From assembly GCA_009859145.1 (NCBI GenBank), contig VRVR01000009.1, positions 355,468-419,467 on the forward strand: a DNA stretch of 64,000 nucleotides, written 5' to 3'. Positions within the stretch are counted from its first letter, which is position 1, and every line of letters begins with the position of its first letter. Below are positions 9,627-60,200 of the stretch, in pieces. This stretch comes from Andalucia godoyi And28 (Eukaryota > Protista > Jakobida). The position numbers and the translations under genes were made by a program. The notes beneath the pieces are model-generated. The model did not search any database. It was not told the DNA's origin and saw nothing but the letters and a program-made list of their open reading frames with translations.

Positions 9627-9976
9627 TCGTCGTGTTGTCCGAGGGGTCACGCAGTCCTTCCTTCATGTTTCTTCTTTCATTGAAATGAAGAAGCCAATCT
9701 GCTTGGACGCTTCGCCGTACGACCGGTGAAGGCTTTTCCTCGTGGTCGCAAAGCATGCGCAAAAGCCAAAAGAGGGGTTTTTTTCCGGGGGGGATTTTGC
9801 CTTTTTCCTTTTATGGGAATTGAGGAAAGCCGCCTGTTTCCGGTCTCCTGTCTCCCCGCAGTTTTCGTCTGCTTCCCTCCTTTTATTCTCTCGTTTCTCT
9901 CGTTTCTCTTCTTTTGTTCTCCCCCCTTCTTTTTCTTCTTTTACCTTGTATCTTTCAAAATTCGTTTTTCCAGACC

Positions 9977-16713: not shown

Positions 16714-17067
16714 GAGACGTCGTTGTGCGCTTCGCGACGAACAAAAAGTGCACAGCCCAACCAAACAAAAAACAAAAATCAATGTCGGGATTTTCTTCCG
16801 GTCTTGGCGAATTTTCGAAACAAGCGAAAAGCCCCGAATATCCATAAAAGGAAAAATCGGAACGCGGATCGCGGACCCCGGAGGGTCAAATTTTGTACTT
16901 TTATACCCTGCAACCTCTGAGTTTCCCCCCTTTCCTTTCCTTTTTTTCTTTTTTTTCTTCATCTTTTTTTCTTCCCTTCATATCCATCGTCTCCATTGTC
17001 TTCTTCCTTCATTCTCAACAACCAACTTGATTTTCGTTTGCACCCCCAAACTCCAGATACAAGCGGC

Positions 17068-20000: not shown

Positions 20001-20271
20001 AGGTGACAGGTGTCAGAGATCTGTTGCTCATCTCAATTACATGTACGCCAAGTTCGACATTGTGCGGCATCGGTACGTGGATCCTTTCGCAGCATCACAC
20101 AAGCCTTTGAGTGCAAATTCGGAAGAGAATCAAGAAGTGTTTCAATTCGGACCTTATGGCGATGATCTGGAAGAGTTTCTGCGATCCGTCATCCCGTCAA
20201 GCCTGGACGGCCTAATCCTCGATGAATGTGCTGACCAGCTCGCAGAAGCCACCGTGATGTTTGCCGGATGA
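17068..20271 (+). CDS. Dynamin-superfamily GTPase
   Basis: G1 VVCGFESSGKTT, G2 ATRCP, G3 VVDTPG, G4 FTRLD, followed by a long helical stalk. First ATG is at 17068. Confidence 0.85.
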   Translation: MLRPYTKPFGTFGPVDTGQHRTRQFSVSDSAATRAALKSEWIRKGTGSSFLREVPDTQRIQKFLDDSHKRLHKQCQETVTTWCPEPYVPLQSPPAAGGRIKRLSEVPLPPTNKDLPQLSDVEFCRVIQSLLESGRPKELIECMKEIDAFALRGALGVDPTHFEQDMKIVGRVQCALARFGDLMHLKKMDLDHWIVVCGFESSGKTTLLSALLGFPAGVTCANTATRCPIMFYLSVDEKCQETMFRIHHWEGNFQDPNCAMSREGTWTPIAKLLDELQRHTENVRKECTPKDEGLTVRSLKVEIKSHYLPFTGVVVDTPGLKIAGGGNGKNAANTEMFLNAFNDQITSIIQTYIQDRVARDKNSVTIISVTNGSQPNAENFYTGRLRKLVPNIDDRVVEVFTRLDTGLSLRPLAAPNNQNGSAFATLQEQEFVLFDVNDAQEFDRILLNMFGAAMTTIRDAARFTPHCVYERKAPVCLRGVEKLCKDFSHMSHKQFCDKMDKVVCHHCTELASMTKGLLHRDMLPNFAEIMRLFSAGEQKFDVDEFFSFARLPWMLLRDMVHSTVATIQRAFPNGVKEYVLQLIDERGMKIGAQVAQNENRSLHTRFQNLSTALVEIVRAALCSSSQIVNEVPTILVLDLLSGCPVFNDVWKVFPLQMHVDNDLRCSSQPDTRTLEHCLSVANLQLTLPEGDKGAFFNVDHPEDHVLRYANSWQLMMWIVDRCLEYFARCTLEIAHGRERVFAGNLGLIPMQTHGFMVAAAVRGAASKSMSVVYDVLLVYMRVALIQVVNELCNISTFLGRITVKSAEMSDASFLSVLWWRLRMSLIHAIDDIFRDLHKYVRSWTFDDVREEQARRRKQGEVAEALRQYADVALQAGGLGGVPDAPPACPPTSCVGGADTGMSAMHSGPLQGNAVWDVILRCITGLTNACNEELWTKQLAEMFKITLRQAQLQIHEHFGHTIRSRLHDVFLADPFQNLGGDRCQRSVAHLNYMYAKFDIVRHRYVDPFAASHKPLSANSEENQEVFQFGPYGDDLEEFLRSVIPSSLDGLILDECADQLAEATVMFAG

Positions 20272-30253: not shown

Positions 30254-33200
30254 ATGGTTCGGAAATCTCCACAATCATCTTCAGCTGCAACAGCTCCTGC
30301 ATCAGCTTCTGCACCAGTTTCTGCACCGGGTGCTGCATCAGATGAATCGAGCGCTCATTTCAGAAACACCACTAGCGCGGATGTTACCTCTCCAAACAAC
30401 CCGCTTCCGCTGCTCCGCCAATTCACCCAGGATGCGACGCAACTTCGACGCGACAACGGCGCAGTGCTGGACCATGGTAAAGAGACACAACTGCTGTCCA
30501 GATTGCTCCGAGAACTGGAGGTCTTTTTGCTGCAGCATTACAAGGCAAGTGGTGTGCCGGTGGTATTGGTGCAAGGATATCAGAGCTCGTCAAAGAGCAC
30601 TGTTGTGAATCGTTTGGCAGGAGAGCCGGTTCTTCCCATGGGGCAGGGTACGTGCACCAAGTTTCCAATTGTCTTAAGTCTGCAGTTTGAGGCTGGCGAT
30701 GACAACTCCTGGACCGCAAAGCTGCTGGCAGAACCGGACAAGCGCGTGCTAGAGGAATCGTCGCGATCAGGGGGTGTTGATCTTCTGCGCTGGCTGGAAG
30801 ACCACTCGGCCGGCAGAGATCTCCGTTTCGACCGAAGCGCACAGATCACGGTGCTGAAGCAAGATGAACGGCAGAGCGTCGTGGTCATCGACCATCCGGG
30901 ATTCTGCCAAAACTATCCGGAAGAAGCCCTCGAACTGTCGCAGAATTCCATTGACAAGCATTTCGGAGGCGGGTCCGAGGAAGAGAGCGACGCCATTCTT
31001 GTGCTTTGCCAACGAATCACCGGCGAAACGGGAGACTCGGGGTGGGACAATCTGGAGCAACTGGATCGCATTCCTGACGGCCGCCTCTTTGTCGCCGTCA
31101 CCATGATGGACACATTCAATCACGCGCAAGTGGCTGAGCGAGTGCGCGCCATCCGAAACCTGTCGCGAAACGACAGAGCGCAGCTCACTCAACTGGACAT
31201 CCTGCTGGCGCTTCAGGAGGAGATTCAGCGTGCAACGTCCAAACAAGACCCAGCGAAACGAGTGCTGCCCCGTGGCACGCGGTTCTTCTTTGTCGCGGGA
31301 TCCAAGGTTTCGTCAAAGGATTTGCTGTCAAACAAGCGGCAGACAACGTGGAGGACGTTCTTGGACAGCGAAGACGAGAGTCTCGCCAGCTTTCTGGACG
31401 AATTTTCGGATCAGTCGAAGTGGCTGGCAGAGTCCATCGAGTTGATTCCGATGACGAACGCGCAGCAGAAGGTATTTGACGAGATGGTTGGCATGGACTG
31501 CCTGGTCTCGGCCGTGCATGCAAAGCACATGGAAAGCGGGATCCGCACGGTTCGAAAGGTTGAGGGGTTCTTGCGGGCGCGACTGGAGGAATGCGAGTTC
31601 CAGGCAAGTGAACTGTATGCATGCAGCCAGTCCCTCCTGGACGTCTCTTCAACAGTGGTCGCCTTTTTGGAAGACTTTGCCGTGCAATTTCTCTCGTTGA
31701 GTCGAGAACAGCCGTTTGACGTGGAGACTGCAACGGTGATGCATTCGGCGCATCCTCTATCCACCGAAACAGAAGCCACGGTTCGACAGTACTTCGACCA
31801 TATTACGAAGTACCACGGATGGACAACCGAGCAGGAGATGGAACTCTGCAGAGAACACATTGGACTGGAGCCGGACAGCTTCCCTCCGTCCCGGTACATG
31901 GAGAATTCGAATGGCGTGAAAAAGATGACAGAAAGAATCGCGCGTTACGCCCGAAATGCGAAGAGCAACCTCTCCACGCTTCCAAGACTGAACCACCGCC
32001 ACGGGCAAGAGATGGCGATCCGACTGGTCCATGTGCATGTCCAAGATCTTGACATGGACCACATGCTGAAGAAAAGCCAACAGAACCCTGGGATGATCGG
32101 CGGAAATCTGACTGAAGTGCTTGCAGTGGTCGTGCAGCGGCAGTACGACGATATCTACCGCGGAGTGCCTCGCTCCGTTGCTGAAGGAATGGACTCACTG
32201 GCTGCTAACTCGAGTACCAACGGTGCTTCGACTTTCTTTGCAACACGCATGGCAACTCAGTCCTTGCTTCATGGACAGTCAGTCCTAAACTTGCTGCTCA
32301 TGGTGCCGAAGTATGCTGCACTCCTCGACCCTTCTGGAAGCGTTGCGTCCAAGATCAAGTCCACACGAGACACGCCAGTCTTCCTGGTCGAGCGCGTTGC
32401 TGAGTACTCAGGAGTGGGAGGTCGAGGTGGAGACCGTCTGCGTGAAAAGGCACTGCGAGATGCAAGAATGCGCAGGTCTCTTGAGGAACCAGACGTCGGA
32501 ACATTCGCAGACTTGCTGTCGAGCTATCAGAAACCAATGGCGAATGCATTCAACTGGTCTGGAGACTTTGCGAGCTTGCGGGAGATTGTGGAGCGAGTGG
32601 CGATCGCAATGTACTTCGACGCAAAGCTGCTGGGAATGAAAGAGCGACTGGAATCGCTGGGAGATTCATTTCGGGTGACCCTCTCGACGGTGAATCCGAC
32701 GCTGACCGCGTGTTCCTCATTGTTCATCCACCAGGACCCGGCTTTCCTCTCCGAATACCGACGTACGTTCCCCATGTCACACTTCGTTCGTGCGTTTCTC
32801 AGCAAGGGCGTCGACGGTGCAGACGATATTTCAATTCTGGAGGCACTGATTCAGGAGATCAAAGCAACTGGCGGCACGCTGCTGGACATGGATGAGCACG
32901 ACACTGATTCTATGTACAAGTACGCGGACAAGGATGCCGAGTTGTTTTTCAATCTTCCGAGAGCGGTGAGATTCTTGCTGTCTGCGACGCAGTGTCTGCC
33001 GGCGTTGGATCGCGACGCTCGTTCCAAGCTTGTTGCCATGTTACCACGAGCGCAATTTACGCCGGATTGCCCAGTTCCGCTGCAGAGCATCAGCGATGTC
33101 AACAGGTTTGACACTGCCTCGTTCAACCACGTCAACCGCAGGATCATCTCCACTTCGTTGTTTGAGTACCATTTGGCGGCATGCCGGATTGCTTCCATGG

Positions 33201-33763
33201 TGCTGTATGCCGACACTCATTCAGGCGGCACAAAACGCCGGGTGTTGGAAACGCTGGAAAGGGTGTTGTCCTTGTTGCTCGGATACCCGTATCCGTATTT
33301 GGAAAGCGAGCGGCCTCAGGAATTGTACTACCTGGAACCGGACAGCATCATCCGCTTCGTACACAAGCACATGAAAGAACTGATCGCTCTCTTCCACCGC
33401 AAGCCAAACGATGCTGTTGCAGCGTTGGGTGGCGACAAGCCGATGGTGCTTCGTTGCGCACTTTACGGCCAGTCTCCGTTGTTCCGCCATCTCGTTGGGC
33501 TGCTTGTGGATGCTCCGTCGACTGCAGACTTCCATGTTGAGATCAAGGGGCACTACAAGAGACTGGCTACCGAAGGAGAAAGACTCGGGTATGTCCGAGA
33601 ACTCGTGAAGTTTCTGCTTTCACAGTCGTTCAAGAAGCTGGATGCGCGCTCCGATGTTGAGAAGAAGATCGCCGTTCTTGAGTCTGAGCGGACAGTCTAC
33701 GCAGAGGCCAAACAATCCTTGGATCTGATGAGGCGCCGGTTGGACAACATGTTTGCTTCCTAA
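30254..33763 (+). CDS. Dynamin-superfamily GTPase, divergent P-loop
   Basis: G1 VQGYQSSSKS, G2 CTKFP, G3 VIDHPG, G4 VTMMD, followed by a long helical region. 1169 aa. Confidence 0.85.
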   Translation: MVRKSPQSSSAATAPASASAPVSAPGAASDESSAHFRNTTSADVTSPNNPLPLLRQFTQDATQLRRDNGAVLDHGKETQLLSRLLRELEVFLLQHYKASGVPVVLVQGYQSSSKSTVVNRLAGEPVLPMGQGTCTKFPIVLSLQFEAGDDNSWTAKLLAEPDKRVLEESSRSGGVDLLRWLEDHSAGRDLRFDRSAQITVLKQDERQSVVVIDHPGFCQNYPEEALELSQNSIDKHFGGGSEEESDAILVLCQRITGETGDSGWDNLEQLDRIPDGRLFVAVTMMDTFNHAQVAERVRAIRNLSRNDRAQLTQLDILLALQEEIQRATSKQDPAKRVLPRGTRFFFVAGSKVSSKDLLSNKRQTTWRTFLDSEDESLASFLDEFSDQSKWLAESIELIPMTNAQQKVFDEMVGMDCLVSAVHAKHMESGIRTVRKVEGFLRARLEECEFQASELYACSQSLLDVSSTVVAFLEDFAVQFLSLSREQPFDVETATVMHSAHPLSTETEATVRQYFDHITKYHGWTTEQEMELCREHIGLEPDSFPPSRYMENSNGVKKMTERIARYARNAKSNLSTLPRLNHRHGQEMAIRLVHVHVQDLDMDHMLKKSQQNPGMIGGNLTEVLAVVVQRQYDDIYRGVPRSVAEGMDSLAANSSTNGASTFFATRMATQSLLHGQSVLNLLLMVPKYAALLDPSGSVASKIKSTRDTPVFLVERVAEYSGVGGRGGDRLREKALRDARMRRSLEEPDVGTFADLLSSYQKPMANAFNWSGDFASLREIVERVAIAMYFDAKLLGMKERLESLGDSFRVTLSTVNPTLTACSSLFIHQDPAFLSEYRRTFPMSHFVRAFLSKGVDGADDISILEALIQEIKATGGTLLDMDEHDTDSMYKYADKDAELFFNLPRAVRFLLSATQCLPALDRDARSKLVAMLPRAQFTPDCPVPLQSISDVNRFDTASFNHVNRRIISTSLFEYHLAACRIASMVLYADTHSGGTKRRVLETLERVLSLLLGYPYPYLESERPQELYYLEPDSIIRFVHKHMKELIALFHRKPNDAVAALGGDKPMVLRCALYGQSPLFRHLVGLLVDAPSTADFHVEIKGHYKRLATEGERLGYVRELVKFLLSQSFKKLDARSDVEKKIAVLESERTVYAEAKQSLDLMRRRLDNMFAS

Positions 33764-34016: not shown

Positions 34017-35099
34017 TTACTGCGCCAAAGTAAATCCACAAGCTTCAACCACAGCACGTACGAAGGGAACACGCAGGACAGCAAGATCTTTTGAAAACAG
34101 TTCCAAAGACTTCCTAAGCGACAAATTTCTTCCAAATGTTCCAATTGGACAGATGCCATCATGGAAGACGTGTTCTGGCCCGGCCATCCACAACTGGCCA
34201 TCCGAAAACACACAGTCATTGCTGAATTCCTGCATATCCCACGGAAGGAACCCACCATTGGTGACAGCAGAGACATACATTCGAAACAATAATGACCCAT
34301 ACGTTTTGGGCATCCCGGAAACGGGGATTTCGGGATGATGCCCACAATTCCGCTGCAGTCTTCCGTTGATTCGAGACTCAATCACGCACCGAAAATTGGC
34401 CCGGGTGTCAAGATCGACTCCTTCAAACCAGGTGGAGGGAAGAAACACTCGCTGATAAAGGCCGAATGGATGAACGCGCTGAAGTTTCGTTCGAACATCA
34501 GGCTGCGATTCCAGCAGAGCCAGCACGCTTTCCGCACGAGAGGACATGTGGTCATTGAACGCTTCGGCGAAAACACGAAGGAGTTCAACGGTGCGACACG
34601 ATCGCTCGTATCCCAATTGCCGCAGCTCGACCTCCTCTTTCTCTTTCAGAAACGGCTTTGCAACGTTCATTTGGGCAAAACTGTCCTGCAACCAGTCAAT
34701 CGCCACAAAGCATTCTTTTTCGCTGCCCTTCTCCATATGCTCGTTTGCAATTGCGATCAAGCAATCCCTTTTGCCCCACTCTTCGTGAACAAACACCTGC
34801 TCAACACGTCCATTTTTCATATCCGCGTCATCCCAGTCGACTGGATCAATCTTTTCTTTCTGTTTAGATAATACTAGTCGACAAACGTGCTTTCTCCCAA
34901 CGAAGACGCGCCAAATTGAAGGATTTCGCAATTGCGGGCGATCGGGATCACGAAGATCATGCACGTCGACTGTAATGTCATCCAATGAACGAACTCCCAC
35001 GGCAGCATCACAACGATTCGAGTGATCCAGATTCTCGACTTGCGAACCCACGAAAAAATCTCTCGAGGCCGACCGCTGAACTCGGCAACGCCATAACAA
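34017..35099 (-). CDS. Hypothetical protein; probably the C-terminal part of the 36739 gene after a frameshift
   Basis: 360-codon open frame with no early ATG. It overlaps the upstream ORF by about 225 nt, and a T6 run at the junction would join the frames if it had one more T. Confidence 0.55.
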   Translation of the reverse strand: MLWRCRVQRSASRDFFVGSQVENLDHSNRCDAAVGVRSLDDITVDVHDLRDPDRPQLRNPSIWRVFVGRKHVCRLVLSKQKEKIDPVDWDDADMKNGRVEQVFVHEEWGKRDCLIAIANEHMEKGSEKECFVAIDWLQDSFAQMNVAKPFLKEKEEVELRQLGYERSCRTVELLRVFAEAFNDHMSSRAESVLALLESQPDVRTKLQRVHPFGLYQRVFLPSTWFEGVDLDTRANFRCVIESRINGRLQRNCGHHPEIPVSGMPKTYGSLLFRMYVSAVTNGGFLPWDMQEFSNDCVFSDGQLWMAGPEHVFHDGICPIGTFGRNLSLRKSLELFSKDLAVLRVPFVRAVVEACGFTLAQ

Positions 35100-36739
35100 A
35101 ACTTCATGTTCTCCAAAACCTCCGCAGGAAGACTCCCATCGGATCCCAGCCCCATGTCAGTCGCACGGGATGAACCGGAGGACAGGAACAGATCGGATGG
35201 AGACTGTGACTGCGTAAACGTGTTGTCCACAGGGTCGAAATACGCTCCCCAATGACGACGATTGTAGAGAAGGTCAGCGGCCATTGGAACCAAGTCATGA
35301 ATTAACAATAGCAACTTTCCGGCAGCATCGTGGTCTTCGGGGCCATTTCGGCGCCGATAGGCAATCCACAAGTGAAATCCTGCTCGCACCGCTTCCCACC
35401 ACGTTTCCGGACTTTGCTTCTGACTGCTGTGCAACAGACCATCGAGGCCGAACCCTGTTCTTGCAAGCTCCAGTGCAACAATCGCTCGATCCAAGTATGC
35501 AGCCTCACCAGTCGCTTCGTGGAGCAAAAGCAGTGTTTCTCCGAGCCAGCGCCGATGACGAGACGCGAACAGGGCCACTGGCGTGAGAATCGCAGCTCGC
35601 TCAAACCATGTGACGCACTGAAGCAAAATCTCGATGCGTCTGTGCATGGCACGGTTCGACAACGAGGATGCCTGCGCAAGACCGATTTGGCCAAGGACCA
35701 TGAGGCTCATGCCAAGACCTTTAACATCTGGCGACGGTCGCACCATGACGTACTTGTCGATGGAGCAGCGTACACTTTGATCTGCACTGCGAATCCGGCC
35801 CAACGAAAGACAGCACTGCGCTGCTATTTGATGAAGCGTGCCAAGCGCATCGCATTGCGCTTCCAGTGAAGGATCCAGAATCATCTTCGTCACACGCCGC
35901 AACACTCTCGCATACTGTCCTCGAGCGAATTGCGACCGAACAATGCGAATCCGCAGCTGAAAAGGCAGCCCCCGCAAGAGGATCTCGTACCGCGCCTCAT
36001 TGGCCTTCTTCAGAGCCTCCGACATCAAAGCAGGATCGGAGACGTCCTCCATGTCCGCATCATAGTCGTCTTTCAACGGATCTTCTATGGGCACCCCGAT
36101 CAGCTTCTTGATCTCATCTTCTATCGAGCTGGCGGAGTTCAACCGCGCCCACGAACGATCAATTAACGCCAAAGCACTCATCGCGCATTTTGTGAGCTCG
36201 GCGTCCTTCTCGGCATCCGCTGGCGATGACGATGAAAGATTGTCACCGTGTCGCAGCCGGCTTCGTTCTTGCAGCAGGTCGCCGTACCGATCATACGTCA
36301 TCTGCAAAATCGTCTTTCCAGTCGAGTTGTCAAGTGTCGACAGCAGGGCGTCAAGCGTCAGCACGGGCGATGACGATGGTGATGATGATGATGATGATGC
36401 ACTGCTCTGCGGCGAAGGGCCAACGAGCAGGTGCATCAACGACTGCTGGATAAAGGCAAAGTCGTGATCGTCCAGCGGCGAAAAGTTGCGTGGACGAATG
36501 GAAGACAGATACGTCTCGAACTCACAGGTGAATGCTGCGTTCGACACATACTGAGTCGGCTCCGGCACAAATGCCACTTCGCTGTTGTACACGCGTCCAG
36601 CAATGTGCACTATGCTCGAGCGATCCGCAGTCGCACGCGGGAAGCGCTCGGCAACAAGGGCCGCAATCCGTTGGCCGAGCACCTTGACCCCGGCACTCCA
36701 TGACGTGTTGTTGGTGGTGTTGTTGCTGTTGCTGTGCAT
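34874..36739 (-). CDS. TPR-like alpha-solenoid protein
   Basis: 621-aa ORF with helical repeats such as LHQIAAQCCLSLGRIRSA, WLGETLLLLHEATGEAAYLDRAI and GFHLWIAYRRR. Confidence 0.65.
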   Translation of the reverse strand: MHSNSNNTTNNTSWSAGVKVLGQRIAALVAERFPRATADRSSIVHIAGRVYNSEVAFVPEPTQYVSNAAFTCEFETYLSSIRPRNFSPLDDHDFAFIQQSLMHLLVGPSPQSSASSSSSSPSSSPVLTLDALLSTLDNSTGKTILQMTYDRYGDLLQERSRLRHGDNLSSSSPADAEKDAELTKCAMSALALIDRSWARLNSASSIEDEIKKLIGVPIEDPLKDDYDADMEDVSDPALMSEALKKANEARYEILLRGLPFQLRIRIVRSQFARGQYARVLRRVTKMILDPSLEAQCDALGTLHQIAAQCCLSLGRIRSADQSVRCSIDKYVMVRPSPDVKGLGMSLMVLGQIGLAQASSLSNRAMHRRIEILLQCVTWFERAAILTPVALFASRHRRWLGETLLLLHEATGEAAYLDRAIVALELARTGFGLDGLLHSSQKQSPETWWEAVRAGFHLWIAYRRRNGPEDHDAAGKLLLLIHDLVPMAADLLYNRRHWGAYFDPVDNTFTQSQSPSDLFLSSGSSRATDMGLGSDGSLPAEVLENMKFCYGVAEFSGRPREIFSWVRKSRIWITRIVVMLPWEFVHWMTLQSTCMIFVIPIARNCEILQFGASSLGESTFVD

Positions 36740-40225: not shown

Positions 40226-42082
40226 TCATTGCTGAACTGCGTGCGAAACACTGTAGAAACAGCCGTGTGCTGCATGGTCGACCACGGCAGCAAACGCATA
40301 ATCGAGACTCGTGATCCACTCTGACACATCTACATTCAATCCTTCAACGCCATAGCCAGAAACAACAACCGGCTTGTAAGCAAAAAACAGATCATCATGC
40401 AGTGCAACCGCATTGGCGAACAGGGTCATCTTTGCTTCGTGCTGCAGGAATTCTCGCCTCAGGCATCCAAGCTTGGCGGAGCGCTCGCCATTGTCGTGAT
40501 CGTGCACTCGAGAAACTGCGTAAAATCGTACCCTGAAGCAGCTTCGAGGATTCGAATGAGGAACCAAACCACCCCTGGGAGGAACTACCACAAAAGAAAA
40601 CACGGCGCTCTCTGCCGCGCACTTTGCTTGCGGCGGGAACGTGCAAGCGAACGGTGCATCGTACGCAATGGCACAGTCGAACGGAGAAGGCCGCGACGCG
40701 AGAAGATCCACAAACATGTTGTAGTGCGAAACATCATAGAACACGAGTGCTGGCGAGTCGGAAGAGATGTTGTGAATATACACGAACTGCCCAGTGATGG
40801 ACGGCAACACCGTGTCGACACTCGCAAGATTTCGCGACCACACCAAGAGATGTCCCTGAAGATCATCCAGTTCTATGAGCTCCTTCTCGGTGCTGGTGCT
40901 GAACGTCTGTGACACCGCAAAGGGAGACACGCGTCGAGCGCACACTTCCCACTCTGAGCCAAGAAAACGCCGAGCTAGAGCAGAAGCATTGAAATGCTGG
41001 CGTCCCAGCACGATCGCACGGTCATCGAATAGAGAAACCATGTGGTGGCTTACATTGGTGGAAACGGGAGACGCCATCCTCGCCCCGGCACCGCGAGACG
41101 ATGGCGACGAAAACGTGCCGATCCTCTCCGTCAACACAATCTTTGTCAATTTGCGCTCCGTGGTTTGCGGATGAAACTCTGTAATGGACAGCTGATGAAA
41201 GGACGTGTCATTTTCCATCGCAAAGTGGGGAAGCTTCCTTGCGCTATCAAACGACGGTACGGCAGAACCAGTGGTGAAGCACACATCCATGCCCTTGACG
41301 TAATCCGCCAATTCGGACGCCAGTGATGCGGTTTCATCATTCCAATTCAAAACTCCCCTCTTTTCCTGCCACACAGTGCAATCTCCCTTCATCACAATAC
41401 TGGTCTCTCTGAACGATTCGTCCAACAATATGGGACGATTTTGTGCCCGAGACCGGTGAAATGCTAAAATCAACGCTGACCGATGCACGCCATCGTTTTC
41501 AAGACATCGCATGTCAAGACGCATGCTACTTTGACCGGGACACGACATGTAGAACAAGTCCAGTGGCACATCATACCGAATCGTCAGCTTCATAAGAACA
41601 CTGTCTGCGGCTGCTGCTGCGGCACCGAGCGACGAGGCGCAGTCTTGCGTGACGTCGTACACGACAAGCGAGGAGTCGTCGGGAGTTTCCAACACTTTTT
41701 GAAGTAAATCCACGCTCCGGTTCACAGGATCGGAAAAGAGGTTGAGCAGGCGGATGTGCACTGTCTGGCGGTGTTCGAAGAAGACAGAAGCGGCGTTGGC
41801 TGCGAGGTCTGCTCCGCATGTGCAAAAGACGGTACTCGACTCTTCCGAGAGAACACCAAAATAGTCGGGTACTATCGAATCGTACCCGTGGCGCTCGCAA
41901 GTCAGAAGATGCCTCCGACGGTCAGACATTGTCGATCGATTCTCCTTGTCATAGAATTCAGCAAGGGCAAAAACGTCAATAGGCACTGGTGAAAGCGCAA
42001 AGGTGAAAAGGTACCAAAGAGCATCCCTTTTTTGCACTTTGCGGGCAGGCAGAGGAAAGCGGGCATCTACGGTAGCCTCCAT
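40226..42082 (-). CDS. Hypothetical protein, paralogue of the 37093 gene
   Basis: ATG at 42082. Shares the colinear motifs listed for 37093-38748, and has an N-terminal CxxHG...CxC. Confidence 0.8.
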   Translation of the reverse strand: MEATVDARFPLPARKVQKRDALWYLFTFALSPVPIDVFALAEFYDKENRSTMSDRRRHLLTCERHGYDSIVPDYFGVLSEESSTVFCTCGADLAANAASVFFEHRQTVHIRLLNLFSDPVNRSVDLLQKVLETPDDSSLVVYDVTQDCASSLGAAAAAADSVLMKLTIRYDVPLDLFYMSCPGQSSMRLDMRCLENDGVHRSALILAFHRSRAQNRPILLDESFRETSIVMKGDCTVWQEKRGVLNWNDETASLASELADYVKGMDVCFTTGSAVPSFDSARKLPHFAMENDTSFHQLSITEFHPQTTERKLTKIVLTERIGTFSSPSSRGAGARMASPVSTNVSHHMVSLFDDRAIVLGRQHFNASALARRFLGSEWEVCARRVSPFAVSQTFSTSTEKELIELDDLQGHLLVWSRNLASVDTVLPSITGQFVYIHNISSDSPALVFYDVSHYNMFVDLLASRPSPFDCAIAYDAPFACTFPPQAKCAAESAVFSFVVVPPRGGLVPHSNPRSCFRVRFYAVSRVHDHDNGERSAKLGCLRREFLQHEAKMTLFANAVALHDDLFFAYKPVVVSGYGVEGLNVDVSEWITSLDYAFAAVVDHAAHGCFYSVSHAVQQ

Positions 42083-42311
42083 TGAGCACAAGAGCTCAAG
42101 AAGACGAGCTGCGAGCCGCCTGTAGATGAAATGCCGATCTCAAATCTCTCATTCCCGATTTTCCGATTTCAGAATTTGGTACAGTATCTATTATTGGAGA
42201 TTTGGAGTGTGGAATTTTCCAAATTAGGAAATTTCGAGCATTACAAAAGGCTTGTTTTTTGGTGGCTAGGTCTCTTCTGGTTTTGATATTGCAGAACTGT
42301 TCACATACTCC

Positions 42312-49926: not shown

Positions 49927-50763
49927 CTAAGGACGAGCGGCACGGTTCTTCAGGATTGATTGACGAACTTCTTCTGCATGCGAGAGACTGTCGGTGTCAG
50001 GCAGCGGATGTGTGGCATTTCGAGCCACTGCCAGACAGTTTTCAAGGTCGTTCTTGGAAAGACTGTTGTTGCAAAAATCCAGAAGCAAAGAGTTCCATGA
50101 TTCTTCGAGATTGCTCGCACGTCGAAGATAATAGTATCGCGCACGCAAGATCTCATTCTGGAATCGCAGAAATGGAGAAATAAGCAGAGGTGGAAAAACG
50201 GAAGAGACGGAAACGAGGAGCGATGGAGCAAAAAAGATCCCTGTAGCTGAAGCAATTCCAGCCACTCCAGACGCGATCACGATATAAACCTCCAAGTCTC
50301 TTTGAAGAGCCTTTGCTTGTTCGAAGAGAGCGCCTTTGGATTCTTGCAAGTCGTTGTCAAATCCCTTGAATTGTGAATGGAGGTTCTTCTTCCACTCTGA
50401 CCATTGGGACACCATCAATTTCTTACTGTCTGCCTTTTCTTTTTGAAACTCGGTCACATCCTGGAAAACGTTCCTGCCGCCGTGGAGTCGTTTGTAATAG
50501 GATGCATCAGAGACATAGTCACGCGCCAGATTGCATTTGGTCTGCATCATCTCCTTGAGAGAAGCGATCACGTCGTCTCCATAAGCAACGTGCTCCGAGT
50601 TGCGCATTTCAGAATCCAACGAGTCAAACTTGTTGAGAAGTTGCCTGTACAAACGACTAGCATCAGAGTGTTCTTTTTGCCAAGCTTCGAGATAATCAGA
50701 TAACTGAATAGTGCTAATCGTAGAAGTGACAAGCGTTGACAACGCAGCAGTAGCTCTCAACAT
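49927..50763 (-). CDS. Helical-bundle/coiled-coil protein with one hydrophobic hairpin (candidate membrane effector)
   Basis: ATG at 50763. Amphipathic helices lead to a 41-aa uncharged stretch VYIVIASGVAGIASATGIFFAPSLLVSVSSVFPPLLISPFL. AATAAA lies just after the stop. Confidence 0.7.
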   Translation of the reverse strand: MLRATAALSTLVTSTISTIQLSDYLEAWQKEHSDASRLYRQLLNKFDSLDSEMRNSEHVAYGDDVIASLKEMMQTKCNLARDYVSDASYYKRLHGGRNVFQDVTEFQKEKADSKKLMVSQWSEWKKNLHSQFKGFDNDLQESKGALFEQAKALQRDLEVYIVIASGVAGIASATGIFFAPSLLVSVSSVFPPLLISPFLRFQNEILRARYYYLRRASNLEESWNSLLLDFCNNSLSKNDLENCLAVARNATHPLPDTDSLSHAEEVRQSILKNRAARP

Positions 50764-51031
50764 CTTGCTCGACGAGAACCGAAACGTCAACGTTTGCAAG
50801 CACACAGTGAAACCAGCTGAAATACATAAACCAGACAACGTAATCTTTTGGATTTTGGAAATAAAATCGCGTTCTGATTCGTGGCATTCGCACGCAATCA
50901 GCGTACCTCGGCGTTGATTCCAATACAAGGATCTCAAGGAAGGTCTGGTTGGATCGTGAACACGTCAGAATCAGAGTCTGGAAATCAAAGAGCTCGTGAT
51001 GGAAGAGCATACCCGTCCCACTTTTTTGGTT

Positions 51032-52366
51032 CTACCGCGTGGTCGCCCGCAGATGGCGCAACAGAAAATAAAGACGTGAAAAGACCCATGCTGAAACGGC
51101 TCTCAGATGATGTATGAATGAAGGAAAGGAGAAAGAAGGACAAGGAAGCCAAAACATAGTAGAAATGTCAAGTATGGGATTCTGCACCTGCACGATTTTG
51201 CAGAAGATCGAGAATTTTACGTGTACAGCAGGCGAACTAATAAAGTTCAAAAAAAAAATAAAATCCCTCAACAACAGACATGAAGTCCCATATCGAAAGG
51301 CCGAAAGAATATCTGCAATATCTGCCGCCAAACGATAACGAGCAGCAAGCCGCTGTCGTTCATGCTGTGTACGTAAAGGCACCTGCGGCTTAAACTTGGC
51401 AAACATATCTACTTGCTGATCATATGGATCGGCCAAACAGGAATAGGAAGCACATTTGAACAAACAAAGGAGGGTACGAATGAGCACTCTTTCGTACAGA
51501 TAGCTCTTGTCGGCAAGAGGAAAGTCGGCAATGGATGCCAACACTGCTTGCTTGATGGAAAATGAAGAAACTTGCCTCCAAAACGCACGTTTCTGCACAT
51601 TTCGCAGATGCTTCACGGTACGAATCACGTCGTGAAAAGCAGGGAACGACTGTCAAAAGGAAGACCATAAGATTCGATGATAAGGTTAGGCAAAAACAGC
51701 AAAGAGACATACGTTGACAGCAACGACGGTGGAACGATGCTCATCATCAAGATGACAATCGTCCCATGCACTGTCGTTTTTGCGTGAAGGAACTTTCCAT
51801 TTCCCATCCTTCACAATTGCGGGCAGCAAGTCGTACTCGAATCCTTCCGTGTTCTCGACTTCGACGGAGACGCGGTTTCGGATCGCGCTGCGAATTCCAT
51901 CCTGCTCACGGACAAATGATGCAAACTGCTTCAATACGGTGCGGGAAGCCGGTTCTGGAGCAGAAGACTCCAACATGATACGACAGAGTAGATCCACATC
52001 CGATCCAGAGGGGACGTCCAGGCCCTGAATCGAACTGCCGGCTAGCTTGATCCCTCCCGTCAACTTATAATTCTTCTGAAGAAACTTTTTTGTCAAATTG
52101 CGCTCTGCAACAGGACGACTGGGAGAAAGAATGCGTCTCATGCGGTCTACGAGCTCGCTACGTGCTTGCTGTTGCTCGGGTCCCAGGCGAAGACGACTCG
52201 ACACAGGCTTCAGACGCTCTCGAAGAGACTTCAAAACATCGATTGACACTGAATTTTGAAAGTCGTCAGCAAACATTCGACACTTTGCTAGGAATTCATC
52301 CACATGAGCTTCCACATTCTGGAAATCGTTCGCAAACCGGCGACACTCCTCTGAAAATGGCACCAT
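51032..52366 (-). CDS. Stand-alone CD-NTase/SMODS/OAS-like nucleotidyltransferase, two exons (52366-51713, 51649-51032; 3' end uncertain)
   Basis: AGSSIQGLDVPSGSDVDLL and EYDLLPA. Splicing gives AVN/SFPAFHDVIRTVKHLR...SSFSIKQ...CLADPY. Confidence 0.85.
51650..51712 (-). other. Spliceosomal intron (63 nt)
   Basis: GTATGT donor, CCTAAC branch motif, CAG acceptor. Removing it joins the 52396 and 51628 ORFs in frame. Confidence 0.9.
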
Positions 52367-52562: not shown

Positions 52563-55500
52563 TTATTGTGACATATAGCGACTCTTGCATCTCTTGAAGA
52601 GGTCCAGCGCATTAGAAGGTGAAAGAGCTATCCAAGAGTCTAACAGCTCAATGTACGCCTCCTTGGTAGACCGATTTTCTTCTTCTCGAAGACGACGCAG
52701 CACATCTGAATCGGGATCATTGGGAGCTGGAAACCTCGCGGCAGTACCCGTCCTTTGGAGAGAGGCAAGGATGACGCGAAGACATCCCTGAAACAGCTCC
52801 ATGAACGTCTTTGAATTCCAAGCTTCAGCGAGGATATTGGATGAAAAGGCTATTGCTGCTTGCTCGAACGCACATGAGGGTATCTGAAGGTTCAAATGAT
52901 GTGCCTCCATTTTGTTCACCAGCTTCAAAACCTTGATGACATCACAAAAACCTTTGTAAAACTTATTTAGTTCCTCAATCTCTCTGCGAGCGGAAATATT
53001 CCGCGACGTTTTGAATTTTCCCTCTTTCCCATCGAGAAGGAGGAACATACCAGTCGAGGTCTGCAAAGCGGGTAGCACATCCACTTGCGCAACGTCGGAG
53101 TTGTGTGGATCTCGAAGTGACACCGAGAATCGAATCTTGCCGTCTCTACGACAACTTTCCAAAACAACCATTTCACTACCTTCAGATTGCTCCTGAAGGA
53201 CATTACGCAATGCATGAGCAACAATGTTTCCGAGCAGTATTACTTCCGCCAGCTGCACGGGTTTGTTAGCTGGATGAGGCCATGTTGCACTCATTAAGGA
53301 GGCATTGTACTCAACACGTGCGGCGAGATCCGAGTTCAAAATCACCACCATATCCATATCAGGATCGAAGAGAGCCGTTTGATTTCCGATACTACCACAC
53401 AATTCGCTTTTCGGCACCAAGTTCAAAGAAGGTAATTCGTTGGAACGTGCTTGGAATAGAGTGGCCCAAGTAGAGCAAATCGCAGTACTTAACGATTCGA
53501 AGAACCTGTTGAAACGACGAAGCCGACTGTTTAGAAGGCTCTCGTCTGACTTGAGTTGAGACGCAAAGTTCCACAAGTCGATATCCTCTCTGGTTTTTCC
53601 CAGACGAATGGAACTGAGCAGATTTTGTATTGCATTCGAACTCTCTTGCAGAAAACGTGACGCATGCTCCCGTGGATTAGCATCTTGTAGGAACGCCTTT
53701 GACCGAATAGAAATGTGTTCTGAACCAATGTCATTCGGTGAGCCTCCAGAAAATGGAGTTGTGTCTCCAGAAGGTGCGGAGTTTGGACGCAAGGAACGCT
53801 CTGTCCTCTGAGCATGACCACCGCCAAACATTGAAGTAGGCTCATATACACCGTCAACCAGCACCACTTCCTCACACGACAGCACAGATTTCGACATCGG
53901 ATCCTGTTTCAGAAAAGCGTCCAAAAGCTCAACGAAATCCGGTACTTCCGTCGCATGAGGGTCAGACAGGATATCAAAATGGAAAATGGACGAGACTCCT
54001 TCCTCACGATCCAGCCGAATTCTGCATTGCACAGAGCTGCTAGAATAGCCCACTATCACGTCCAGACCGAATGCCGGGGGATGGCCACGGGAAAACAAAG
54101 GAAACAATAAAGAATGAGTTCCCAAGTACGTTATGAACCGCCAGAAATGCAGATCCGTCACAACACCGTCAAACATTCCAGTCAAGACTCCATCCCCAAC
54201 ACATCGAACTGAAAGCGAAACCGGAGCAGCCGCAGCAGAGTTGGAGCATATCGACTTCCAGCGAGTGTCAAGAGTATCCTGAGCATGCGAGTGCAGATCG
54301 CAATGACGGTACCACTGAGGGAAAAATACAAGTTTGGATTCTTGGTCCATTGGAACCACAACGCCAAGCGTGACCAACATCCCAATAACCTGTTCCGCAA
54401 CTAACCTGTGAGAATCAGCAGGGCAAAACTTGTTGGTCCGAAGATGCTCTTCCAGATTGGTTTTCGCAATTTCAAACTGAACAATACCCGCATTCTCCAA
54501 CAAATCCTTGTAGACAACACTCTTGCTATGACCAACATGCTGCAGTCCGCCTTTTCCATCGGTTGGTGGAATTAGTTGAGCACACGTACGGATGAAGACA
54601 TCGGGTCGCAACACGATCATGTGTCCATCCGACGAACATGCAAAGAAACATCCGAGCGCGACTAGATCATCAAAACAGCTCTTCACCTCGGCATTGGTCT
54701 TGCACACACTGGCAATGCCAGGAATTCGATCGCGAATGCTGTCTACTGCGAGAATTACATCTTTGCAATCCCTGCACATCTGCTCGAGAACAAGGTTCCG
54801 CAGAAGAACCTTTGGCAATCGACGATGAAAGTCTTCAATCGTTTTCGAGAGCCACTCCATCATTGGCTTCTGACCGTTCTTCCGCTGACGCCTGTCGTTT
54901 TCCACAACGATAAACCATCGATCATTTGAAAATTGTCGAATTTCAAAGAATGCATTGAACTGAGGTTTCTTGAGAACCTTTCCCAAACACGCATTGCAGG
55001 CATCCAGAAACGTCTTCTGCCAGTTCCATTCTCGGGACGAAAGAGAACAACGAACCTTTTCCCACCAAAAAGTAGCATACGAGTTACCATGCGTGCCGAT
55101 GAGAACCACCTTCGACATCAATTTCTGTTCCTTGGAAGCATGGCACGCACCAAGATTGGCAATGATGCGCAGCCACGAAATGATATTACTCTCGATTGCC
55201 TTCTCCAGTGTCCCGGTTTGATGGGCAACATAAAGATCGCGTAGGCTAAACACACAAAAGTACAGAGATTGCTTGCCGAAGAAGAGCGGATCAAACACGC
55301 GAAATACGTTCTGACCGGCGAAATCAAGAACGCTCACTGATAGCGTGTCTCCATCCAGATCTGTCAATACTCGAGCGGTGACGTCGATGCGTTCGCGAGC
55401 AGTGACTTTTTCGCGAGCAACATTCGGCGATGGTTGCCAGGAGGAGGGAGTGACGATCGATTCAGCGACATCCTCAACCTCACCTTCTGCATCAGCAACT

Positions 55501-56975
55501 TGCGGTGAAGCTGGCGAGATCACAGGTAATTCCACTGTACTCGGTTGCAGGGTGGAGGAACCATCAGTATTTCGAAGTGGCGACCTCAACTCTTGTATCT
55601 GCTCTGCGACATATCGATTCATCAGCCGTGACAGCAACGTTGTTTGCTTACCCTCTGTTGAATCTGTCCACACATGTTTTCGTATGGATATCTCGAGCGT
55701 TCGCACATCACCAACTTCCGTGGATTTCTCCGTGGGATCAAACAGTGTTCCACCAGATGACAGATTCTTGATCAGACTCGTCTTTCCCACTCGTGCATCT
55801 CCAACGACCAGCAGACGCACGCGCGATGATCGAGTCCAAACATGGTCCTCAATGTCGATCTCGGAAACATCAATCCGCACTTCCCTTGTACTAGGAATGG
55901 GAAATGCCAGCGGACGCGATGCATCAACGTCATCCAGTAGAGATCCATTCGACAACACATTGGTTTCTGCTTCCACGGAATGCACAACATTGTTGCGCAC
56001 GAGATACCCGGCAGACGACAGCTTAATATCGAACCCGGATTCGGACGACATGGAAGACACTGCGCGGCAACGAGCACTCACACCACAATCAGCTGCAGAA
56101 ATGAGATGCATGATTTCTGTTGATTTTTCAACATTGCCTCCAATTGCAAGAATGCGATTGTCAATGCACACCGCTGCTCCATACGATTGTAAGACATTCA
56201 AATCTGGACCAGGAAATCACTTGTTCATTCGAGGCTCGTAAATCTCGACGTTCCTACGCCCATTTCCTCCAATGGTATAGATTAAACCATGGACAATCAC
56301 TGCAGAATGTCCAGACCGACGCATACTCATCGACGCCACAAACGACCACTTTCCCTCTCGAAGATCCACCCTCTCAACACTGGAGAGCCCAACAACAACC
56401 GAGTATCCACCAATCGCATAAATGCATTCGTGCATGTGATCAGCCACAGATGCAAACTGCTTACGACCCACATTCATGGAATTCAATTCGAGTTCCCATT
56501 GGCTGTTCTGCGGATGGAACGTCTCAACAGAAAAGCGGTTGTCCGGCAAGGAATTCCCGCCAAGAACGTAGATGCGTCCATTCAAGGATACTGCACAATG
56601 GCTGGTACGAAAAACCCGCAATTTGGGACCAAGGAGTCTCCACTGTCCATCGGCACCATCTTCAAGACGGTACACATCTTTTCCTCCAACACAGAAAATG
56701 GCGCCATTGAGTTCAACGGCCGTCCAGGAGTGAGGAAAATTATCATTCAGAGACGGATCTCTCGTCCACCTCCATACCGAAACATCGCTCGACGTGGTCG
56801 TATCGAGGATCTCGACTTGACCACCATTGCCGATCGCATAAACACGACCATTTGGTTTCACAACTGCAGACCAGTAAGTTTGAATCGTCTGTAAACGTGG
56901 CCCAGGCATCCAAACTCCATGGGATTCATCTCGTCGATTCACTTCTTTCCACAGCTGCACCAAATTCTCAGTCAT
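52563..56975 (-). CDS. Kelch propeller - Roc - COR - CD-NTase/OAS-like fusion with one in-frame TGA (56217-56219)
   Basis: Six Kelch blades (GG...W). Roc LLVVGDARVGKT, DFAGQ and VVLIGTH, then COR-like helices. NTase CGSIGNQTALFDPDMDMVV, VDVLPA, FCDVIKVLK, PSCAFEQ and PNDP. The two ORFs are in the same frame, separated by TGA plus FPGPD. Confidence 0.85.
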
Positions 56976-57213: not shown

Positions 57214-60200
57214 AATGACTGCCCGACTCAGGGCACGCACTTTTTCCCCTTGAGTCGACGGTCCCAAAAATGTCAGCGTCCGGCCTCAATTCCTTCCAAA
57301 AACACCACCAACAATGTGCTGCAGCAAAAGTCGGCCGAGTCCGTGGACTCTGTGCCTCTGCGCCGCGGATCGGTAGCAATAAATATCTCGAGCAACAGAC
57401 AACCGCGCCTTATCGAACATGAGCAACTTATCCGACGCAGCTCCGTCTGTCGAACACGATGACGAGTTTGATCCGTTTACGATATTACAAGTATCTGCGA
57501 GTGGTACAGTAGCAGTTCCCGATGTTACCGTGTCGTGCAAACTGCAGGTCATTGGATTGAATGGCTGGTACCCCGAGTGCTGGGATGTTTCCAGGCGAAC
57601 CGTTTCTGCGGATACCTACTCGCAGCATCTCTTGAAGGCAGTCTCCCTTGTCTCTGTGGATCTGCTACAAGGCGCTCTCAAGCCAAAAGGAATGCCCGAG
57701 AAAACATGGAAGCTGGACATCAGAGGAGATTCCTCTGATCCCACCGCCGCGAATAGTGTTGCAAGGCCGACCGTTGTTTCCCATCAAGCGTATATCTGCC
57801 TTTCAAGAATGCTGGAGTGTTTGTGGACCTCCATCGACTACAGAACGGGCGGCAAGCCCACGAAACGACGCGGGGGCGACGTGGAGTATTGGGTGTGTCC
57901 GTTTGGAAGAGAATCTCGGAAAAGCAAGGAAGGAGTGAAGGGCCTTCGGGCACTTGACAGAAGACACAAGGATTGCGGATGTCCTGTGACATATCGGGTC
58001 TACGAGCTGCCTGCAGTGGCATCGACAGAGGATCATCCAATCAGCATCGTGTACGAAATGGGTGTTCACAATCACAATCCGCTATCGACTCAACACTTGC
58101 AAACAAACAGTATTGATAACCGGCTTCAACAGCAAATTATCAAATACGCAGAACAGGGACTTCCCGCAGCTCAAATTCACAAGCTGGTGTTGACGAGCGC
58201 ATTGTCTGCTGTCGGAAATGTTCGCAGAGACGGGATTGACATGTTCTATGATCAGCGACTGTTTCCATCGTACGATTCGATCGTTAAGATCATCAATAGA
58301 AGAAGATTGACAAGTCGCTCAGATGACAGGCGGTTCGTGGAGCGAATTGCCGCTGAATTGCCTCAAAATGTTTTCATCGACAGCATGTTCGAAAAGACTC
58401 CGGATGGCAAGATCACATCCCACCTGGTTCTGCGGGTGGGAAGTCCTGTGTGCAATGAGAGCCTGAAAAGACTGATGCCTGGAGGACTAGTGCTGATAGA
58501 CTCCACTCACAATCTGAATGATTACGCCTACCAAGTGTTCACTGTGATGGGTATTGATCCCCGCACACTCGAATCTCGAGTCCTCGAGCACTTGATTACG
58601 TCGTCTGCGGATTGCGAGACGTTGGAGCGCTGGTTACGAAGTTTGGCAGAACGAGCTCAGGGGACACCTGCCGAGGTTATTGAGGATAAGTGTCGAACGC
58701 AGACTCCGGCAATAGAAAAGGCTTGGCCAGAAACGCACATTCACTACTGTTACTTTCACAGTATGAAGACCTTTCGAGAAGAGTTCACCAAAGCTGGCGA
58801 GCAGCAGAGGCAACAGCTGTTGTCTTGGCTGCGGCGCATATACTATTCCAGAGATCCCCAGGTTTTGTCCGAGAACGTTTTCCACTTGGAAGCGTTCTTG
58901 GAACGAAACAATCTCAAGGACTGGAAACAGTACTGGGAATCCAACTGGGCGAATTGCCTGTCACGTTGGACTCGTTGCCACTCGATATTCAAATTTGTTG
59001 GTACGAACAACCACCTAGAGTCTTACCACAAAACTCTGAAGCACGCGAAAAAGGCGGCAGGTGGACGGCGGATATTGGCTGTTTTTGATTGCGTTGTCCT
59101 GTTGCTACAGCAGCAATTTTGGAACAACAACAAAATCTTGGAAAGGGCTACAAACCATTATCAGAAGAGTCACCTCGAAGACTTCAGACGACGGATGACC
59201 AAAAGTTTCGGAAATGCTCGCTGGTGGGCAGTACGCAAGCTGCTTGTCGACAGAGGACAATGGTGTCAAACTATTCTTCGTTGCCAAATACAAAACAGAT
59301 TTTGAACAAAATGAGAACCTTGAGGAAACGCAGGAGGAAAACGATATTCAGGACAACGTGAAAGAGGTCTACGAAGTGCGTTTGGGAGACGGAGTATGTG
59401 CGTGCACGTGTCCCGCGTTTGTTGAAAAGGAGATTCCGTGGTGCAAACACATGGCGTTCTGCGCCGCTGAGGATAGTATCGACGTCTTGTACTATCCTTC
59501 TCCTCAGGACAATATGCAGACAGTGGTGGACGAGATGCTCAAATGGGCACAGCGGGAGAACGGAACCATGGGTGAGAACAACGGACGTATACCGATCGGT
59601 GAGCGCATATTTGGCCCATTGGAATGGCCAGCAGCACTCCAGAGAGGGTGGTCAAGTCGACGAAGAGCAGGCAGAAGCGCCAGTTGAAGATGCAGGACCC
59701 TCTGGTTCAGGTACGTTTCAGACTCTGGCACATCAAGATGTGTGGAATGCACGGGAAAGAGCTCGAGGAAACTTGCAACGGCTCACTAGAGAACTCAGTG
59801 TGATTGACATGCAGGCTCCGAGTGTGCTTGGTTACCTTGATGATCTGGACCGCACACTGTCCGCGCAAACAGTGCCGCCCTCACTTCATCTACCAGTCGC
59901 TTCTAATTGTCATGGGTGTATTCGTCCAGCAGCCGGTTTTGAACGTACGGAAAAGAAACGTGGAAGAAAGAAAGCAGATCAAAGTGAGGAGCTTGTAAGG
60001 TGGAATGCCGATTTGAATGTCGACGAGATGTGCAGGGCGTGGACCGAAAGAGGGGAGGCAACACAAGCTCGAGCCCCGTCAAAGAAGAAGCGCCGAGCAG
60101 AAGCGTTTTCTCAGCTTGCTTCACCAGGCAACGAACAAAGAAATCAACAGGAAAAACAAGGGTTTAACGGTGGTGATGCGGCGGGAAACGCCGAGAGCAC

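Follow-up and report, generated by a model that had tools for sequence, protein, structure and literature searches.

A Kelch-Roc reading frame of Andalucia godoyi with a predicted cGAS/DncV-like nucleotidyltransferase at its C-terminus and a single in-frame stop codon

Proteins of the ROCO family, represented by LRRK2, the Roco and GbpC proteins of Dictyostelium, the C. tepidum and M. barkeri Roco proteins and MASL1, have attracted interest mainly through LRRK2, and the way in which the Roc-COR unit transfers its signal to the output domain is still debated. The cGAS/DncV-like nucleotidyltransferases (CD-NTases), which include CdnB, CdnC, CdnD, CdnE and DncV of CBASS systems, cGAS and the cGLRs, and OAS, respond to differing cues: nucleic acid activates cGAS and OAS, HORMA/TRIP13 activates CdnC/D, and for others the cue is unknown. 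Exchangeable effector domains are a feature of the NLR/STAND receptors, for example the fungal NLRs that carry PNP_UDP nucleosidase heads. A locus of the free-living jakobid Andalucia godoyi And28 shares features with each of these groups. It lies on the minus strand of a 64,000-nucleotide (nt) stretch of DNA, here termed the window (GCA_009859145.1, contig VRVR01000009.1, positions 355,468 to 419,467), in which all positions given below are counted. With a probability of roughly 0.55, a modular protein of a family referred to here as Kelch-Roc, combining sensor, switch and output, is encoded at the locus or was so until recently. The description of its architecture as a CD-NTase output placed behind a switch of ROCO type, a combination of known kinds of module, is computation-based and partly supported.

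From 56975 to 52563 the minus strand can be read through 1470 codons in a single frame that is interrupted once, by a stop at codon 253, whereas the other two minus-strand frames contain 50 and 69 stops over the same span, indicating that the continuity of the Kelch-to-nucleotidyltransferase frame exceeds chance. The frame runs through six Kelch blades, a Roc-type G domain, a region of ~400 amino acids (aa) described here as COR-like, a linker and a 383-aa C-terminal domain (Table 1), and the GC content of third codon positions is even across the gene (0.48, 0.48 and 0.46). In a BLASTP comparison five paralogs were found to be collinear with the full frame from residue 1, at up to 72% identity, with the similarity stopping at residues 1029-1048. 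The top database match of the 1212-aa open reading frame (ORF) that follows the stop is a 1162-aa protein (P0001) with 100% identity, and the remaining matches are exclusively A. godoyi proteins (ANDGO_01445, ANDGO_00489, ANDGO_07311, ANDGO_04544 and an NCBI entry named 'Kelch and P-loop NTPase'), which identifies the window as nuclear DNA of this jakobid. An earlier note on this DNA had proposed one Kelch-Roc-COR-nucleotidyltransferase protein at 52563-56975. Most of the features that it listed lie at the positions it gave, but it treated the span as an uninterrupted gene and overlooked the stop that breaks the ORF, and its COR domain is unconfirmed.

The stop is a TGA, which leaves Kelch blades 1-5 on one side and blade 6 with all downstream domains on the other. 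It replaces a conserved Trp of the Kelch repeat that is present in five of the five paralogs (e.g. YEPRMNKWFEGP in P0003). Decoding of TGA as Trp is ruled out, because several well-supported genes of the window end in TGA as their ordinary terminator and because the 1470-codon frame uses 27 TGG codons. A tiny intron spanning the TGA can also be discounted, the sole GT..AG pair being 17 nt apart, frame-shifting and below the intron range of this compact (~20 Mb), intron-poor genome (55-756 nt; PMC7050145). The assembly was produced from 454 data corrected with Illumina reads, and its authors report excellent agreement with RNA-seq (PMC7050145); because of this correction the TGA is more likely to be real than an assembly or sequencing error, and the copy that bears it could be non-functional, or could function with no sensor attached. 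If the copy is non-functional, the locus would be a member of a multi-gene family that has become a pseudogene only recently, in a transposon-bearing region, with an architecture that is real in evolutionary terms but no functional product. The retention of the Trp in all paralogs, the severing of the propeller after blade 5 by a codon that is a normal stop in the window, the MULE transposase directly upstream and the low likelihood of a substitution error after Illumina correction all favour such a history, which nevertheless appears somewhat unlikely: the lesion is the only one in 1470 codons where the other frames have 50 and 69 stops, the catalytic and G motifs are all intact, and the 1162-aa part from Roc to nucleotidyltransferase offers a usable Met and corresponds to a public gene model.

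If the stop is real and the locus active, two proteins could be produced, a five-blade Kelch fragment and a sensor-less Roc-COR-like-nucleotidyltransferase protein that would act alone or together with Kelch-Roc paralogs. This is how the locus is divided in the EukProt proteome, which lists exactly P0052 (252 aa, Kelch) and P0001 (1162 aa), the latter beginning at an internal Met 51 codons into the downstream ORF. A five-blade piece of a six-blade propeller is, however, unlikely to fold, the paralogs are all single chains, and a promoter between the two parts is unsupported, so that an arrangement of this kind appears improbable. Under the preferred interpretation, that of a Kelch-Roc protein encoded now or until recently as one chain, the evidence for each of its domains can be considered in turn, beginning with the C-terminal one.

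The C-terminal domain is predicted to possess a cGAS/DncV/OAS-type nucleotidyltransferase (NTase) fold. AlphaFold2 gave no usable model from the single sequence (predicted local distance difference test score, pLDDT, 34), but with a multiple sequence alignment of relatives it returned a model with pLDDT 87.9 and a predicted template modelling (pTM) score of 0.86, in which a Pol-beta NTase core is followed by a C-terminal helical lobe. A Foldseek search of the PDB with this model gave 129 matches at E<=1e-3, headed by CdnB (3e-9). The best 50 of the 129 are CdnB, CdnD, cGAS, CdnE, CdnC, MiD49/51, OAS1, cGLRs, MAB21L1 and DncV, the single exception being the GLD-2 poly(A) polymerase at rank 46. 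In the model, strand 1 ends with the GS motif, strand 2 carries DxD and a later strand bears the third Asp, these being the strands expected to hold them, and the catalytic G[GS], [DE]x[DE] and third [DE] are all intact in the window copy. The assignment of the C-terminus to a cGAS/OAS-like enzyme, which the earlier note had staked on the region modelling as an NTase, is borne out for the fold and the active-site residues, and NTase activity is predicted.

At the level of sequence the domain is more distant from described families. None of the curated NTase models reaches its threshold (Pfam SMODS E 0.17; NCBIfam CBASS_cyclase_b 0.08; also Mab-21 and OAS1_C), and phmmer comparison of the C-terminus with PDB sequences gave nothing relevant. 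Six PADLOC 'oligonucleotide-cyclase' models match the domain at 2e-5 to 0.04, in a library that has no curated cut-off, and a profile of the NTase family (A1) aligns to CdnE and CdnD chains on GS..DxD. An exhaustive HMMER search detected 35 relatives (E 3.5e-33 to 1e-3), all unannotated sequences from metagenomes, ENA, NCBI and MMETSP and mostly environmental. They share the motifs GS[VI]xNxT..[SP]D[LM]D..V.LN, [EQ]FD[LV]LPAL, GLREMIKxLKL, LPSCxFE and LPxPNDP, several have lost GS or DxD, and weak MTPAP-like and NTP_transf_2 matches occur within the family. A word-index homologue search found no match for the C-terminal 412 aa and only one member for alignment A1, and a metagenome scan with alignment A4 yielded 196 pattern matches and zero confirmed relatives.

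The loss of GS or DxD in several relatives, the occurrence of MiD51, MiD49 and MAB21L1 among the fold matches, with GLD-2 at rank 46, and the MTPAP-like and NTP_transf_2 signals could be taken to mean that the domain is a nucleotide-binding scaffold like MiD49/51 or MAB21L1, or an enzyme that tails RNA or nucleotidylates proteins, rather than a synthase of second messengers. This appears unlikely given that the window copy retains GS, DxD and the third Asp, that active CD-NTases (CdnB, CdnD, cGAS and CdnE) lead both the fold and the profile matches, and that the PADLOC matches are exclusively to 'oligonucleotide-cyclase' models. A second-messenger synthase of CD-NTase type is thus the favoured prediction. 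With the described CD-NTases the domain has in common the two-lobed fold (template modelling scores of 0.55-0.66 to CdnB, CdnD and cGAS) and the GS, DxD, D active site, and some members of its family resemble them in having a sensor or regulator of their own attached; it is unlike them in falling below the curated SMODS, Mab-21 and OAS1_C thresholds and in being covalently fused behind a GTPase module.

NTases of the same family can be detected in other large proteins. P0012, encoded by one 3.3-kb ORF (L001 4497-7796) on a 17-kb JGI metagenome contig of 46% GC, on which the neighbouring ORFs have no Pfam match, contains LRR, Roc and COR-A according to Pfam, matches LRRK2 at 9e-25 and has the NTase at its C-terminus, while P0025 appears to be a fragment of another protein of this LRR-Roc-COR-NTase type (LRR, leucine-rich repeat). 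In P0010 and P0021 the NTase is N-terminal and is followed by a GBP-type GTPase and tetratricopeptide repeats (TPRs), and in P0008 and P0014 it is joined to NHL propellers. Linkage of these NTases to large GTPases is, as far as these sequences indicate, recurrent. Taken together, the fusions in P0010, P0021, P0011, P0008, P0014 and P0033 comprise GBP with TPR, NHL with or without a kinase, and possibly a tandem (P0033). A neighbour-joining tree of the NTase domains, which has no support values, is star-like and groups neither the ROCO-linked nor the GBP-linked members; with such a topology it was rejected as a readout of single versus multiple fusion events. The architecture had been put forward in the earlier note as one not recognised from known ROCO families. 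No description of a ROCO-NTase protein was found in the searchable literature, but the A. godoyi locus is not unique in this respect, as P0012 demonstrates. Andalucia is absent from the text and the 33 supplementary files of the Culbertson and Levin 2023 survey of eukaryotic CD-NTases (PMC10732462).

At the other end of the frame, six blade motifs occur in phase (VYAIGN, IFCVGG, IYVLGG, IYAIGG, IYTIGG and ILAIGG) and Pfam Kelch_1 matches at E 1.9e-26, in agreement with the six blades of the earlier note, although with the TGA between blades 5 and 6 they do not lie on one uninterrupted chain. They take the place of the N-terminal LRRs that are typical of ROCO proteins but not strictly defining, and Kelch repeats are known to flank Roc-COR in Dictyostelium ROCO proteins (PMC6320773). 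The G-domain motifs GDARVGKT, DFAGQ and IGTH, also recognised earlier, are all at the expected sites, and the Pfam Roc model (PF08477) scores 35.6 bits, above its gathering cut-off of 27. A PDB search with the single G-domain sequence is weak (top match MbRoco2 RocCOR, 0.018). A profile built from six Andalucia G domains is led by LRRK2 Roc (7e-9), with MbRoco2 RocCOR at 3e-6; the first 27 PDB matches of this profile are LRRK2 Roc or MbRoco2, except for a Rab-like GTPase at rank 18, and other Rab, Ras and Miro proteins appear only from 3.6e-4 upward, placing the domain specifically with the Roc type. Between switch I and G3 it carries a low-complexity insert of ~110 aa. Of the canonical set, G1 and G3 are present and G4 is THGN, with THGG, THCA or THAN in the paralogs, so that the guanine-reading Asp of [NT]KxD is absent throughout; P0012 has THKD. 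Lack of the Asp leaves GTP specificity unproven, and the designation GTPase is itself presumptive.

The region of ~400 aa behind the Roc domain is conserved in all paralogs and is termed COR-like here, but no sequence method confirms that it is a COR. The Pfam COR-A and COR-B models gave no match at E<=10 in four members of the Kelch-Roc family, a family profile of the post-Roc region gave none among PDB sequences, and phmmer and hhalign gave none between the post-Roc region and the COR of P0012. When the COR sequences of P0012 and P0025 are combined, hhalign produces a collinear but non-significant alignment over 156 columns (E 0.15), which pairs LGVVVP..FFPQW with FELAIP..FFIP, HFWRFITYLG with LFFFRLHLLA, and the next beta segment. 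The Roc-to-NTase spacing is ~450 aa, the same as in P0012. COR appears to be hard to see by sequence, because P0012, a true ROCO protein, is itself below the COR-A cut-off (30.6 versus 35.3 bits) despite its match to LRRK2 from the LRRs into COR.

An alternative is that the protein is not a ROCO: an unrelated helical/beta region would follow a small GTPase that is Roc-like, and LRRK2-style Roc-COR mechanics would be inapplicable. The missing COR signal in Pfam, in PDB sequences and against the P0012 COR, the non-canonical G4 and the 110-aa insert in the G domain are in keeping with such a protein. The specificity of the Roc affinity in the family profile, the spacing shared with P0012, the collinear pairing of expected motifs, though at E 0.15, and the weak conservation of COR even in P0012 point the other way, as does the statement in a review of the ROCO family that Roc does not occur in the absence of COR (PMC6320773), and the alternative is considered quite improbable. 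As a ROCO-type protein, the A. godoyi product would resemble the described members in carrying a Roc-type G domain within a large multidomain chain, an N-terminal sensor of repeat type and an enzymatic output behind a post-Roc region of ~400 aa. It would differ from them in that this output is an NTase instead of a MAPKKK-type kinase or a death domain, in lacking LRRs, a recognisable COR sequence and the G4 Asp, and in its large G-domain insert.

The paralogs share the first ~1040 aa and diverge at the C-terminus, which marks the end of the chain as an output slot. P0003 ends in an MTA/SAH-nucleosidase (PNP_UDP)-like domain (NCBIfam 7e-4; P0003 alone was scored), P0002 ends in a sequence near-identical to the C-terminus of P0003, and P0004, P0005 and P0006 have other tails. 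In P0003 an internally duplicated helical segment lies ahead of the nucleosidase-like domain. In the Kelch-Roc family the sensor-switch body is thus constant, while the C-terminal output module is exchangeable. In this respect it is similar to the NLR/STAND receptors, which likewise combine sensor repeats, an NTPase switch and a variable effector, the A. godoyi paralogs exchanging the NTase for a nucleosidase-like domain; the two are distinguished by the switch, which is a Ras-like Roc domain and not a STAND ATPase, and by the C-terminal position of the effector.

A mechanism can be proposed in which the Kelch propeller, with its six blades, would sense a ligand or associate with a partner protein, and the Roc-type nucleotide-binding domain together with the ~400-aa region would serve as a conformational or oligomerisation switch governed by nucleotide state. 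The switch would turn on the cGAS/DncV-like NTase, the product of which, a linear or cyclic oligonucleotide signal, would be recognised by a downstream receptor. By analogy with CBASS, cGAS and OAS, and in view of the cyclase-like and SLATT-like neighbours described below, an immune or conflict role would be the most likely one. Several observations weigh against the proposal. The TGA is found in an Illumina-corrected assembly and the proteome lists two proteins in place of one. COR has been undetectable by every sequence method tried, and no curated NTase model exceeds its threshold. The loss of motifs in some NTase relatives cautions that the fold alone is no guarantee of activity, an Asp-less G4 in all paralogs makes GTPase function an assumption, and the SLATT assignment depends on two matches near E 0.05-0.08.

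Three neighbouring genes are located downstream of the Kelch-Roc-NTase gene on the same strand. The first, which begins 197 nt downstream of it, is SMODS/CBASS-cyclase-like (NCBIfam CBASS_cyclase_b 9e-9, PADLOC cyclase 3e-6, Pfam SMODS 6e-5). Its public model of 226 aa is seemingly truncated, since the helical lobe reappears once a 63-nt GTATGT..ACAG intron is spliced out, after which exon 2 matches Mab-21_C weakly. The eSMODS and OAS superfamily (PMC10732462) likewise includes CD-NTase homologues from non-animal protists, and the top match of this neighbour is to SMODS/CBASS-cyclase, whereas the NTase domain of the Kelch-Roc gene belongs to a separate, mostly environmental and unannotated family. 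The second neighbour, a SLATT-like membrane ORF, has no ATG before its first hydrophobic helix and may be spliced to the upstream cyclase-like gene; enumeration of possible splices between the two gave 25 frame-keeping GT..AG combinations, with a convincing donor in none. The third encodes an NTase with TPRs and a right-handed beta-helix, an unusual combination (Pfam Beta_helix 8e-36, TPR, weak NTP_transf_2), and lines up with profile A1 on GS..DxD in hhalign (E 0.027). PADLOC scans found no nucleotide-sensor domain, and no further defence-type domains in the other large ORFs of the window. A cluster of NTases with a possible CBASS-type effector is suggested by these genes, weakly as regards both the SLATT call and a functional link.

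Elsewhere in the window, the segment directly upstream of the Kelch start (57419-59687, +) contains a MULE/Mutator-type transposase ORF of 628 aa and, after it, an overlapping ORF with a weak match to the SWIM zinc finger that is below cut-off (Pfam E 0.013). Large proteins with dynamin-family GTPase domains are encoded at 16996-20271 (+) and 30254-33763 (+) (Dynamin_N 6e-10 and 9e-11), making the window, with the Roc gene, rich in large GTPases. A 1503-aa cysteine-rich protein (1115-5626, -) contains 12 Ephrin_rec_like repeats (1e-79) and NCD3G-like segments. Three ORFs of 621 aa each (15097-16962, 34874-36739 and 40226-42091, all -), the first of which has the P-loop LVVGKEGLGKS and coiled-coil-like matches, are not a repeat, their identity being 6%. 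A 1676-aa ORF (9914-14944, +) has no Pfam or PADLOC match and is situated in a part of the window with strong AT skew (-0.26 to -0.29 at 12-16 kb).

Table 1. Positions in the window of the Kelch-Roc-NTase frame, its predicted domains and motifs, and the three downstream neighbours.
Feature	Position	Strand	Basis or remark
Start ATG	56973-56975	-	Coincides with N-terminus of paralog P0003
Kelch blades 1-5	56220-56975	-	Kelch_1, blade motifs; paralog-collinear from residue 1; public model P0052 (252 aa)
In-frame TGA	56217-56219	-	YEPRMNK-stop-F(PGP) here, YEPRMNKWF in paralog
Kelch blade 6 (ILAIGG)	56076-56216	-	After TGA
Roc-type G domain	55056-55832	-	Pfam Roc; family profile versus PDB
G1, GDARVGKT	55779-55802	-	Motif
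G3, DFAGQ	55311-55325	-	Motif
G4-like THGN (IGTHGN)	55083-55100	-	Motif, Asp absent
COR-like region, ~400 aa	53868-55055	-	Kept in all paralogs; position and length as in P0012 ROCO
Low-complexity linker	53715-53867	-	Paralog similarity ends here
Predicted cGAS/DncV-like NTase domain, 383 aa	52566-53714	-	AlphaFold2 and Foldseek, PADLOC, motifs
GS motif, GSIGNQT	53376-53396	-	Motif
DxD motif, DPDMDMVV	53343-53366	-	Motif
Third Asp, QVDVLPAL	53064-53087	-	Motif
Terminal TAA	52563-52565	-	Ends NTase-bearing frame
Neighbour 1, SMODS/CBASS-cyclase-like gene	51650-52366	-	Exon 1 51713-52366; intron 51650-51712; exon 2 below 51649, end uncertain
Neighbour 2, SLATT-like membrane ORF	49927-50937	-	Pfam SLATT_4 0.043, NCBIfam SLATT_1 0.081 (weak); hydropathy peaks
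Neighbour 3, NTase (GSAKKGTTVHSSDVDVYV, OAS-like motif) with TPR and right-handed beta-helix	46101-49736	-	Public model P0054, 1211 aa

If the Kelch-Roc-NTase architecture is correct, cGAS/OAS/CBASS-type nucleotide signalling would extend to a jakobid, and a covalently attached GTPase would represent a new mode of gating for an NTase. A natural ROCO-type switch with an NTase output would also offer a second, easily assayed read-out of Roc-COR signalling. The swapping of C-termini, the fusions of the NTase family to GBP-type and LRRK2-type proteins, and the presence of three NTase genes beside a possible SLATT effector point to an unexplored set of conflict or immune genes in protists. A bolder and rather doubtful extension is that A. 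godoyi, as a deep-branching eukaryote, possesses ROCO-type pattern-recognition receptors whose exchangeable effectors are driven by a Kelch sensor and a Roc-COR switch, that at this locus the switch activates a CD-NTase of which the product is read by the cyclase/SLATT-like membrane module, and that in other protists the same NTase family has been wired independently to an LRRK2-type ROCO and to GBP; were this the case, the system would constitute a eukaryote-built, GTPase-gated counterpart to bacterial CBASS.

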